From assembly GCA_052426225.1 (NCBI GenBank), contig JBNJNM010000021.1:434001-498000 (forward strand): a DNA stretch of 64,000 bases, in the 5' to 3' direction. Shown piece by piece: positions 27,363 through 39,872 of the stretch. The position numbers and the translations under genes were made by a program. Origin of the DNA: Zancudomyces culisetae HAW-14-8. Taxonomy: Eukaryota > Fungi > Kickxellomycota. The first letter of the stretch is position 1; each line of letters starts with the position of its first letter. The notes under the pieces are model-generated. The model searched no databases and was not told the DNA's origin. It saw only the letters and a list, made by a program, of their open reading frames with translations.

Positions 27363-27806
27363 TTCAATACATCGGATTTTTGCTTTTTTTTAGTAATTTT
27401 AGATTACAAGAGAAATATAGATTTTTGAAAGTGCAGCGAAAAGATTCTACTTGCACTAGATCGATCATTCGTATCTTACATGTTTAAATTAATAACACCG
27501 TAGTGGTACCTCCACATAAAATAAACACAAGAACAACCCTCTATAAATACATTCACTTTTGCCTCAATGTTGTAAGCACATTGTCTTGTTGAGTAATACC
27601 AATCATGATACAGTAAATATCCCTACTACTAGGGCAATTTCCTAGGCAGCAGTCGAACCAGTATGTATTTCCTAAAAATATATAAAAGTTCATGATACTT
27701 ATTATGGTTAGCCTTGCATTTGGCGCTTTGCCAGAGCCAGAGCTGTTGTGTATTCAAAGATGTGGCACTCGAAAAGAGTGTACATATAAGCAGTGGTTAA
27801 TAGTGC

Positions 27807-27812
27807 TTTATT
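27807..27812 (-). terminator. Candidate AATAAA polyadenylation signal of the SPS mRNA
   Basis: AATAAA on the minus strand, about 27 nt downstream of the SECIS candidate. Confidence 0.4.
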
Positions 27813-27838: not shown

Positions 27839-27947
27839 GACAATAACTAATCAGATCAGGCGGAGTGGCGGAAGCACCAACGAATGAAGCTAACTATCCT
27901 TAATTTTTCTCCTTTAACTACCTGGTCTTCACTCCTAGCTTTTTATC
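27839..27947 (-). promoter_or_regulatory. SECIS element candidate in the 3' UTR of the selenophosphate synthetase gene
   Basis: Helix I GAUAA..AGCUA / UAGUU..UUGUC. Core GUGAA (27932-27928) / UGAU (27853-27850). Helix II GACCAGGU / GCCUGAUC with 7 of 8 positions paired. Unpaired AAA (27915-27913) lies 12 nt after the core. Confidence 0.72.
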
Positions 27948-28073
27948 CCAGATTTTGGATATAAAATTAAAAAGTATTAAAAATAAGACGTATATGTAAT
28001 GAGGTTTCACAGCTAAAATTATAAAAAGTTGTTGAATTAAATTCTCAGCATTCGATGAAAGCTAACGAGATGC

Positions 28074-29623
28074 CTAAGCATGTGGATCCATGACTTCAAC
28101 GAATAAAGGTTCGTTAGATAAATATGCATATGGTTCTGAATCGCTGACACGTTCGAAGACCTCTCCTACCACAAACGCCGGCCAGCCTTCAAGCTCGTGC
28201 AGCTCTTTTATGAGCATTGGTGCATTTTCACGACTTATTGAGATCAACAAACCGCCTGAGGTTTCGGCAGAGTATCCCGTTTTTAAACCGTAATCAAAAA
28301 CATCGTTAACTCTGAGAGCATTCGCAAAGCATGGCAAGGTGTGAATTTCAAACTTTACACACGCTTTCTGGTTGGAGGCAAGTTGGTTCGCATGGCCCAG
28401 TATTCCAAATCCAGTGACATCCGTGGCAGCATGTGCCTTGTATTTGTGCATTAGCTGAGCTGCCTTGCGATTCAACCGGACCATACTGTCAATTGAGGAG
28501 TTGTAGAGTGAGATTATTTCTTCTTTGCTAAAAATTTCCAATAATTTCTTTTCCTTTTCTTTATTATAAAGCATCACATGCGCATTAACAGCAACGCGAG
28601 TTCCCAATGGTTTTGTAAGAACAAGTACATCCCCAGGTACCGCCGATACAGGTCTACACATCAAATATCAAAAAAATAGCAGTAAAGGGAAATAGTCATA
28701 TAAAACTAGCAAAGTTTTGCTTTACCCACCTTATCATCTCGCTTTCTTTGACTATACCAGTCGCAACACCACCGAGCAAGAACCATGGGTTTCTAATGGT
28801 TTGTCCTCCTGTCACAATGGTACCAGCCTCATTTGCATGATCTAGGGGTTATTTCAGAATGTCAAACACAACTTGAACGTTGTAAATATCGAATATTATT
28901 ATATATACTACAAAGTTAAGTACCATGAAATCCTTGGATTATTTTTTTTAAAACAATGTCCCTTATCTCATCCTCCAACTTCTCACTAACACCCAGAATC
29001 ATCAACATATTATCACATTCAGTAACTCCCATAGCATATAAATCTGAAAGGACGTTTGAGCACGTTATTTTCCCCTGTTTTTTTTTTAGCAATATTGTAT
29101 TTACATTTCAAATTTTAGCATAGAAACAAAAATTTACATACAATTTCCCGCCATTAATGTCAAAAAGAATAAGTAGAGATCTTAAACTATTTTCAACTTT
29201 ACCATCAAATATGGATCTTCTACTAATGGATAAAAGCAATCGGTAGTTTGCACTATTTTCAAGCCTTCATGCCTTGTATCTTTTATGCTAGAGTCAAATC
29301 CAATGTATTCGTTCTTAAAGTCGCTTAGTATTTTTTCTAATTTTTCCTGTGAAACTATTTTTTGTATCATATTATTCTCTAGATCTCTGATTCAACATGT
29401 TGAATGTACATTAACAGCTCTGAAAAAAATATTTACGTACCCTTACAACCTCATCCCTTGAGCCCTGAGTAGCTGGTTAGCCTCCACCCTTTTGGCAAAC
29501 CCAGACGCTCAGGGTCAAACTCTCCCCTTTCCTATTTTTTATGTTTCACTTTTAATTTGAATTTTATTTTTTTTAGAAGCGAATATTGAGCTATTGGATT
29601 TGGAACTGTATCTTTCATACCAT
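28074..29623 (-). CDS. SPS2: Selenophosphate synthetase (SelD/SPS2), selenoprotein with in-frame UGA; exons 29623-29621, 29531-29441, 29354-29203, 29074-28924, 28841-28730, 28653-28074
   Basis: Spliced product [37 protein letters not shown]...[32 protein letters not shown]...GGQTIRNPW...[13 protein letters not shown]...[13 protein letters not shown]...[10 protein letters not shown]. All five introns are GT-AG and phase-consistent. Confidence 0.95.
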
Positions 29624-37820: not shown

Positions 37821-39872
37821 ATGGGCGAAGAAATTGGCGTGCAAAAATTTAACCCCCGCGTCTACTACAACTGCAGTTGTGAAGTGAACGACAGTCAGGT
37901 AGGCAAAACCGAGGGGGGCGAAAACGATATAGTGCAATATAGAAAGAAGAAAGCGCAACACAATCCCGATCAGTTGTTTTTTTGCTACGATTGTGACGCG
38001 ATAAGATGTAAAAATTGTGTGTTTTTGGAAGCAGCAGGATTTTACTGCCCTACCTGCCTATTCGAAGTACCTATGACTTCAGTACGTGCAGAAAATAATA
38101 GCTGCGGAAGAAATTGCCATTCTTGCCCAGTTTGCGACCAAATACTGGTAGTGCTGGAGGGAAGCGGTAAAAAGGATATGAACGATGTGGATGGAGATAA
38201 AAAATATTGGTTTCAGTGCGGAGTTTGCGCATGGGATTCACGGGAGATTGGATGGGAATTTTCTAAACCCACAGGAATATCAGGTAAGAGCTTTGCAATA
38301 AGGGAGTGCTTTTTTTTATTTTTTTTAAAAAGCTGAATTAGTGGTGAGATATAAACCCTTTGAAGGTTACCAAAGGCTCCAAGATGTCTAATTAATGATA
38401 AAAAAAAAGTATGGATATTCGACTGTTGGGTATTGCTGTGAGTGGTACAAACAAATATACGTGTGTATTATACCTCAAGATAAATCAGTAATGGAAAAAA
38501 ATAGGACAAATCGCAGAACTTGGTATGAAAGTACAGGCCAGTGAGGAATTTGATAATTTGGTGCAGCACTTTAGTGAAATACAGAAACAATCAGAGGCTG
38601 AGCGCTCAAATATGACAAACACACTTAGAACATATAGAGGCATTTACAATAAGGTGTATGGAATAGAAAAAAATGCAGGGCTTGGAGCAGCAGACTCAAA
38701 TCCTAACGATAAGAACCTTAAAGAGTACAGTGCCAAGGTACATGTGGGTGAAGATCAAGCTGTGTTGATAAAGCTTGCGCAAGCAAAGACCGGAGATGAA
38801 TGTAAATGCTTTTATTGTATTATTACATGAAAGGAAAAAAAAGGCAAAAAAATATATAATACTAGTAATTGATATATTATATGCGGTATATAACACGATA
38901 TGAAAAATATTTGGTATTTTAGGCATCATGCATAAAAGAGTAAAGTAAGAGGAATTTTTCTGAATATCTGAGATATCAATTTTCTATTAAAAATTCTACT
39001 TACTATCTCTAAAGAGACTATTGATAAAAGTCATGAATATTCGGTTATACAATAGGGATAAGTATCCAAAACCCGTACATCTAGTAATGAAACCAACTAG
39101 AAGATGTAAAAAGTGTCGACATATTTTGATCAGGCCAGAAACAAAGGCACAGAGTGTTAGATACAAGATCAAGCTAATGGCGGTGAACCATGTACCAAAA
39201 ATCAGCATTCCAGTCGAGTTGGCACCTGGGAAGCCAATTCTACCTAGCAAGGGATTTACCACGGGCAAATACTATATCCCCATCAGAATAGCAAATCCCA
39301 TGTATGTTCCAATTGATGTAGAGTTGGCGGTGTTAGATAGTGAAAAAGTAGGAGCACATGTGATTAAAACTACCGAAATAAAGGCAAGGTTCGTTCCAGA
39401 TAAAGTACACATAAATGAATACAGAGAACTTTGGGAATATGATGAGGATATGGAGGAGGATAGAGACGGGTTAGAAGGGAATCATGCTGTGGATTTTGAG
39501 ACGGAATACCAGTACAAATGTCAGTATAGGTCGGGAAAAGGTTTGACTAAAGGCGGGTTAGAGGAGGATGTACAAACTGTGATTTATAAAAGGTGCATTG
39601 AGCCACAGAAACAAGATGTTTTAAGTAGAAGTGGGAACAAAGTTTTGATCGTGTTGGAGCTTGACATACTAAAACCGAGAGCTTCAATTGGCGTTTCGGT
39701 GATGATGAAGTATCGATATAAAAAATCTGTGGAAATTGAGGACTCAAGTAGGGGAAGTGGATCCTTGATGGACACTGGAGAAGATGGACAGCAGCAGCAA
39801 AGTGAACAAATTCAAGAGCAGATAGTGCTGCAAACAGTAGAAAACTCTGTCTTTTTTGATCTTGAGTTTTAG
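37821..39872 (+). CDS. DCTN4: Dynactin subunit p62; exons 37821-38283, 38505-38801, 38923-38944, 39056-39872
   Basis: Cys-rich LFFCYDCDAIRCKNC..YCPTCLFEVP..CGRNCHSCPVC..CGVCAWDS, and TRRCKKCRHILIRPE..YKIKLMA. Confidence 0.88.

Follow-up and report, generated by a model that had tools for sequence, protein, structure and literature searches.

A candidate SECIS element with an enlarged apical domain in the 3' flank of the Zancudomyces culisetae selenophosphate synthetase gene

The core of known SECIS elements follows the consensus UGAN/KGAW, and SECISearch3 rejects candidates whose apical loop is overlong (PMC3753652). Among described variants, GUGA_AA is a form that the elements of green algae and sponges commonly have (PMC3473315). 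For fungi, the 2018 preprint by Mariotti et al. (10.1101/314781) reports that a few early-branching species use selenocysteine, Z. culisetae included, with SPS and SelenoH as the selenoproteins. According to that preprint, SECISearch3 at maximum sensitivity found SECIS elements in only 5 of 16 fungal selenoprotein genes; its authors proposed that undetected fungal variants exist which drift together with a divergent SBP2, and named finding them as an open task. The hairpin described below may already be among the five SECIS elements drawn by Mariotti et al. (10.1101/314781).

In the current study, we examined a window of 64,000 nt from Z. culisetae HAW-14-8 (contig JBNJNM010000021.1, positions 434,001 to 498,000), in which all positions are counted from the first letter of the window. 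The hairpin at 27947-27839 on the minus strand is a concrete and statistically surviving candidate for a fungal SECIS variant, and it makes the question of such variants testable.

The SPS locus and the anatomy of the hairpin

An intron-containing gene for selenophosphate synthetase (SPS/SelD) of Zancudomyces culisetae, a gut fungus, lies on the minus strand of the window. The best database protein match, 'Selenide, water dikinase [Zancudomyces culisetae]', is 98% identical across the last exon. The in-frame Sec TGA, which lies in the catalytic motif, occupies the identical site in all eight fungal SPS loci that we inspected, and the convergent neighbor of the gene is COX14-like. The first-pass annotation had placed a SECIS about 130 nt past the stop codon and upstream of an AATAAA; the hairpin in fact begins 127 nt past the SPS TAG, with an AAUAAA downstream of it at 27812-27807. 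Coordinates of all of these features are collected in Table 1.

Table 1. Coordinates of the hairpin, of the SPS gene features, and of related elements in other loci (plain numbers are window positions; prefixes L and G are our own handles for loci and genome)
Feature	Position	Strand	Basis or remark
Whole hairpin	27947-27839	minus	kink-turn core, helix I, helix II, AAA, apical part
Helix I, 5' strand, GAUAAAAAGCUA	27936-27947	minus	sequence and fold
Loop GGA	27935-27933	minus	sequence
5' core quartet GUGA (UGAN half of the kink-turn)	27929-27932	minus	consensus UGAN/KGAW (PMC3753652)
Helix II, 5' strand, 13 nt, AGACCAGGUAGUU	27916-27928	minus	mini-hairpin energy -7.7 to -8.1 kcal/mol
AAA, unpaired, 13 nt after the core UGA	27913-27915	minus	sequence
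Expanded apical domain, 46 nt	27867-27912	minus	sequence and fold
ACUCC	27866-27862	minus	sequence
GCCUGAUC	27861-27854	minus	sequence
Helix II, 3' strand, ACUCCGCCUGAUCU	27853-27866	minus	pairing and shuffle test
3' core GA, then U	27850-27852	minus	with U27853 the KGAW half, UGAU (27853-27850)
Helix I, 3' strand, UAGUUAUUGUC	27839-27849	minus	sequence and fold
Sec codon, in-frame TGA	29451-29453	minus	motif LKG-U-GCK (LKG-TGA-GCKG)
SPS stop codon TAG	28074-28076	minus	C-terminus alignable with Harpellales orthologues
AAUAAA, likely polyadenylation signal	27807-27812	minus	27 nt past the hairpin end
Motif m1, UGUGAAACCU	28002-28011	minus	sole 3'UTR block conserved over five Harpellales SPS genes
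m1 in relatives	L002:4155-4164; L006:4618-4627; L003:4139-4148; L005:2736-2752 (S. culicis)
AUGACGC	L002:4256-4262; L003:4333-4339; L005:2912-2918; L006:4793-4799
S. culicis SPS core and distant strand	L005:2877-3109
SelH distant-partner element	L051:1977-2289; G000:C11:3954899-3955211
Syncephalis fuscata SPS SECIS	L068:3897-3954		core-to-core span 57 nt
Quaeritorhiza haematococci SPS SECIS	L070:3806-3862		core-to-core span 56 nt
Synchytrium microbalum SPS SECIS	L072:3578-3628		core-to-core span 50 nt
Polychytrium aggregatum SPS SECIS	L073:4152-4211		core-to-core span 59 nt

Every segment that the first-pass annotation had assigned to this hairpin is present on the minus strand at the coordinates it gave. 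The core, the paired helix II and helix I are all there, as is the AAA, which lies 13 nt after the UGA. The core, UGAA (27931-27928) facing UGAU (27853-27850), matches UGAN/KGAW and allows tandem G.A pairs. Above it, helix II forms 11 pairs over 13 nt: eight of the first nine positions are paired, the exception being one C/A mismatch, and at the top a 2-nt bulge is followed by three further pairs. Its energy (-7.7 kcal/mol) falls between the extremes seen in four positive controls (-6.9 to -15.4). Helix I contributes five contiguous pairs, AGCUA/UAGUU, and is extendable. A helix III is available above the AAA through pairing of GGAG (27912-27909) with either CUUC (27874-27871) or CUCC (27865-27862), and it encloses a small further hairpin.

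The GUGA core had been called non-canonical. It is not: it fits UGAN/KGAW (PMC3753652), and GUGA_AA is commonplace among green algal and sponge elements (PMC3473315). The hairpin has the form of a type II-like SECIS whose core is ordinary and whose apical domain is about double the usual size. It resembles the eukaryotic type II SECIS (SECISearch3 model; RF00031) in its location in the 3'UTR of a Sec-UGA gene, its UGAN/KGAW core and U.U pair, a helix II of about 13 nt, an unpaired AAA on the 5' side, an upper helix, and a helix I under an internal loop. Unlike the type II SECIS, it has an apical part (from the AAA to the return strand) of about 50 nt rather than about 25, and the internal loop around its AAA is strongly asymmetric. 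With the green algal and sponge GUGA_AA elements it shares the G before the UGA and the apical AA, although those elements belong to unrelated lineages and, in the description given by that paper, have the usual size (PMC3473315).

The apical domain exceeds the length limits accepted for known SECIS elements. As SECISearch3 discards candidates whose apical loops are too long (PMC3753652), standard tools could well miss this hairpin, and the earlier suggestion that it escapes standard models is plausible. No SECIS match at E <= 10 came out of Rfam, whether the window, the isolated UTR or all related loci were scanned. This silence says little about the hairpin, since Rfam searches likewise missed the canonical fungal SPS SECIS controls (three to four of four). 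A covariance model built from the single Quaeritorhiza sequence recovered Syncephalis alone. When the whole genome was searched with Rfam SECIS_1 (RF00031), one sub-threshold match of 23 bits was returned. It lies at L067:3200-3258 (G000:C11:1478699-1478757) in a long ORF whose translation is acetyl-CoA carboxylase-like, and given this coding context we regard it as a false positive.

Fungal controls, rarity and folding

Positive controls were sought with a scanner that combines the UGAN/KGAW core with the energy of a 13-nt helix II, applied to eight fungal SPS loci that were retrieved via their proteins and that all carry the Sec TGA. Compact, canonical SPS SECIS elements were located in four of these loci (Syncephalis, Quaeritorhiza, Synchytrium and Polychytrium), at 57 to 228 nt past the SPS stop codon; all four have an AUGA core followed 13 to 15 nt later by the beginning of an AA(A). 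In the SPS locus of Endogone sp., where the Sec TGA is present, no clear SECIS was found. None of these five taxa is among the five species named in the 2018 preprint (10.1101/314781).

The hairpin and the control elements occupy the same place, 3' of the stop codon, in the same gene. Its AAA, 13 nt after the UGA, sits inside the range of the four controls. Its first two helix II pairs, A-U then G-C (5' UGA-A-G / 3' C-U-GA), are like those of Quaeritorhiza and Synchytrium, and a one-base variant of them occurs in Syncephalis and S. culicis. The hairpin differs from the controls in having GUGA in place of AUGA, and it has no sequence similarity to them beyond the core. The most obvious difference is one of size: the core-to-core span is 80 nt, versus 50 to 59 nt in the controls, and the apical part is about 50 nt, versus about 25 nt. 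The enlarged apical domain claimed by the first-pass annotation is thus borne out, at roughly twice that of a canonical fungal SPS SECIS.

How often such an object arises was estimated with a filter whose limits came from the weakest control: a 5' RUGA; a 3' KGA followed by A, C or U; a helix II of -6.9 kcal/mol or lower; AA 12 to 17 nt after the UGA; and a span of 45 to 130 nt, the upper limit having been picked with the candidate's 80-nt span already known. In each of the four control loci this filter recovered the true SECIS alone, with both strands considered. In Z. culisetae it returned 3 matches in 553 kb (both strands counted), the hairpin among them, so about 0.0015 matches would be expected in a 325-nt UTR. 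The sole other match in the window, at 38073-38161 on the plus strand, lies within a coding ORF (37821-38336) for a Cys-rich protein and on that account is taken as a false positive.

The helix II score taken by itself is less restrictive, and is reached by 3% of 600-nt segments of the Z. culisetae genome. When the 5' core was fixed, the observed 3' strand was better than 299 of 300 shuffled downstream sequences (0.3%; p = 0.003). From the SPS stop codon to the convergent COX14-like gene, the hairpin is the top kink-turn candidate, and no better SECIS candidate was found elsewhere in the UTR. As a SECIS-shaped object, it is statistically unlikely to have arisen by chance.

Thermodynamic folding gave a more mixed picture. 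Folded alone, the hairpin is the minimum-energy structure, with a pairing probability of about 0.7 for helix I plus helix II. The fold in which the core is left unpaired consists of helix I, a 3/0-nt internal loop, the core, a helix II of 3 + 5 + 3 pairs, an unpaired UAAA, a helix III (GGAG/CUUC) and a small terminal hairpin. Its folding energy is not exceptional (z = -0.66). When the whole UTR (0 to 290 nt after the stop) was folded, competing pairings won, the helix II pairing probability dropped to about 0.01, and forcing the hairpin cost 2.8 kcal/mol above the minimum. We count this result against the hairpin. We do not regard it as decisive, because nearest-neighbor models score neither sheared G.A pairs nor a bound protein.

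Conservation and competing explanations

A second, older Z. culisetae assembly (our handle L066) differs from the window at one position over 28073-27749 (325 nt). That position, 27893, is in the apical domain; all hairpin stems are identical in the two assemblies, which consequently offer no covariation. Seven differences follow in 27748-27608, and then none until the COX14-like gene. In the SelH 3'UTR, the same pair of assemblies shows about 13 differences in 600 nt. Indirectly, this distribution points to constraint on the SPS UTR and to an end of that UTR soon after the AAUAAA. The stretch at 27608-27748, between the convergent SPS and COX14-like genes, is probably untranscribed spacer.

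The relatives supply the main weakness of the SECIS reading. No match to the hairpin sequence, and no compact element passing the filter, was found in the SPS 3'UTRs of S. simulii, S. megazygosporum, S. culicis and F. boomerangus, whose stop codons we verified by protein alignment. The core and helix are therefore without counterpart in these four other Harpellales, contrary to the conservation that would be looked for in orthologues. In a MAFFT alignment of the five Harpellales UTRs, the UGUGAAACCU block alone was aligned. This block (m1) occurs 60 to 240 nt past the SPS stop codon, and in Z. culisetae it lies outside the hairpin; its variants are UGGGAAACCU in Furculomyces and CUGGAAACC in S. 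culicis. UUAAGGA and AUUAAGGAU are also shared between UTRs, at a level that is not significant once multiple testing is allowed for.

On balance, and with little more than even confidence, we lean towards the view that the hairpin is the functional SECIS of the Z. culisetae SPS mRNA, a type II-like element with a doubled apical domain. By analogy with known elements, we infer that it would be present in the mature mRNA, fold as a kink-turn, bind SBP2 and be active in recoding. The tandem G.A/A.G pairs of GUGA (27932-27929) and GA (27852-27851), together with the U.U pair, would build the kink-turn. If the general eukaryotic pathway applies, the divergent SBP2 of this fungus would bind it and bring eEFSec with Sec-tRNA(Sec) to the ribosome, where the UGA at 29453-29451 would be decoded as selenocysteine. 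What stands of the original SECIS interpretation is its context, anatomy and rarity; what falls away is conservation in orthologues and the description of the core as non-canonical.

A rather unlikely but serious alternative is that the true SPS recoding signal of the Harpellales is a different element, built on m1, and that the hairpin is a nonfunctional by-product (for example, a decayed duplicate of m1 that pairs by accident with downstream sequence). The 5' strand of the hairpin (AGCU-AGGA-GUGAA-G-ACC) does look like m1 with its flank (AGCU-GUGAA-ACC), the pattern that a local duplication would leave, and this keeps the alternative alive. m1 is the sole block conserved in five of five Harpellales SPS 3'UTRs, with a total mismatch score of 3 that lies beyond the shuffled minima of 5 to 6. 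It is no general genomic signal, there being no genome-wide enrichment (42 occurrences versus 74 for the reversed control). In Z. culisetae and S. simulii it is found 61 to 66 nt after the stop, and the SECIS cores of Syncephalis and Synchytrium are found at 57 and 63 nt. It is also shaped like the 5' half of a SECIS, with GUGA or GGGA, then A, and in three species AAAA 9 nt later. A drifted element would be in keeping with the preprint 10.1101/314781, in which fungal SECIS are proposed to drift alongside a divergent SBP2. However, when m1 was tried as a SECIS 5' core, no 3' partner strand beat the shuffled controls in any species, and it resembles the canonical core AUGAAAGCU (7 of 9 bases) no more closely than chance allows. 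Moreover, it is missing from the Z. culisetae SelH 3'UTR, although SelH must use the same SBP2, and an accidental by-product sits awkwardly with a hairpin that passes an otherwise very specific filter.

That the hairpin is a functionless chance structure, with the SPS SECIS located elsewhere or unrecognizable, seems to us improbable. AT-rich sequence allows many alternative pairings, the z score given above is unremarkable, a looser filter yields 9 matches per 128 kb, and the hairpin is not kept in relatives; against these observations must be set the low expectation per UTR from the control-calibrated filter, the result of the partner test, and the near invariance of this stretch of UTR between the two isolates. 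Box C/D snoRNAs carry a C box (RUGAUGA), a D box (CUGA) and a 10- to 21-nt rRNA guide adjoining the D or D' box. A transcript of this type, or some other kink-turn RNP of the Snu13/L7Ae family lying between the convergent genes and having no role in Sec decoding, would account for part of the anatomy: the C box would be GUGAAGA, with a single mismatch, the D box, CUGA (27854-27851), is perfect, a terminal stem of 5 bp stands beside both boxes, and the length of about 97 nt fits a snoRNA. Read in this way, the hairpin would share the RUGA..GA / CUGA kink-turn, the short terminal stem and the length with this class. Yet complementarity to the fungus's own 18S, 5.8S and 25S rDNA unit is at the level of random windows and G.U-rich, none of it adjoins the D box, no C'/D' boxes were seen, there was no Rfam snoRNA match, and the hairpin is not conserved in relatives. 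In addition, a Watson-Crick A-U pair follows the G.A pairs, as in a SECIS, where box C/D RNAs have U.U. We saw nothing else in favor of this last explanation and consider it highly improbable.

Should the reading as a functional SPS SECIS be confirmed, search tools could be relaxed, and further fungal selenoproteins may be found as a result. It would also bear on the choice of cis element for fungal (yeast) selenoprotein expression systems.

Other selenoprotein mRNAs

Two other mRNAs offer hints in the same direction. In S. culicis SPS, 283 nt past the stop, the 12-mer GAUAUGAAAGCU matches the Syncephalis SECIS core region exactly and occurs nowhere else in all of the sequence that we retrieved. 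The only good 3' strand for this core (...GAGCU-GA-A, control-like) lies 228 nt downstream (p = 0.04), which lends the expanded apical domain support of a partial and indirect kind. The Z. culisetae SelH gene (G000:C11:3954423, motif SIEHCTR-U-RVFSS) has no compact element of the hairpin's kind by the filter. Its 3'UTR does contain an AUGA (L051:1977) and a GA (L051:2288), 311 nt apart, that are joined by 11 consecutive pairs (fixed-core p < 0.003; about 0.03 per UTR). A homology search with the SelH N-terminal ORF returned the Z. culisetae protein itself as the sole match.

A pyrimidine tract plus CUUAG precedes the 3' strand directly in SelH and at a distance of about 20 nt in S. culicis, which makes a 3'UTR intron conceivable in both. 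The putative introns would be at L051:1992-2276 in SelH and at L005:2900-3090 in S. culicis SPS. The SelH element may represent a SECIS whose apical insert is very long, or one that is split by such an intron. With their distant partner strands, S. culicis SPS and the SelH of Z. culisetae hint that apical expansion characterizes this lineage, and that an oversized apical domain is a common cause of missed elements. One speculative idea, which we put forward tentatively and hold to be short of probable, is that Harpellales selenoprotein mRNAs combine a normal kink-turn and helix II with large, lineage-specific apical expansions, or even spliced introns. The sizes involved are about 50 nt for the apical part of Z. 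culisetae SPS, and 228 nt and 311 nt from core to core for S. culicis SPS and SelH, respectively. If true, this would explain why SECISearch3 found SECIS in just 5 of 16 fungal selenoprotein genes, and it would imply that the divergent fungal SBP2 has no need of a compact apical loop.

Beyond these, the heptamer AUGACGC is common to the four Smittium/Furculomyces SPS 3'UTRs and absent from that of Z. culisetae. We tried it as a canonical 5' core and rejected it, there being no consistent GCG-GA partner and no consistent SECIS fold among these UTRs; a type I-like fold built on it in S. simulii was weak. In S. simulii the heptamer is followed by a consensus 5' splice site (CAG|GUAAGU).

For a further Z. 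culisetae ORF, a protein search returned no homologue, and its 3' flank contained no SECIS-like element. This two-exon ORF (L062:915-1521; G000:C11:4824645-4825251) is SelK/SelS-like, with an N-terminal membrane helix and the end GGGG-TGA-G-TAA, and is an unconfirmed selenoprotein candidate.
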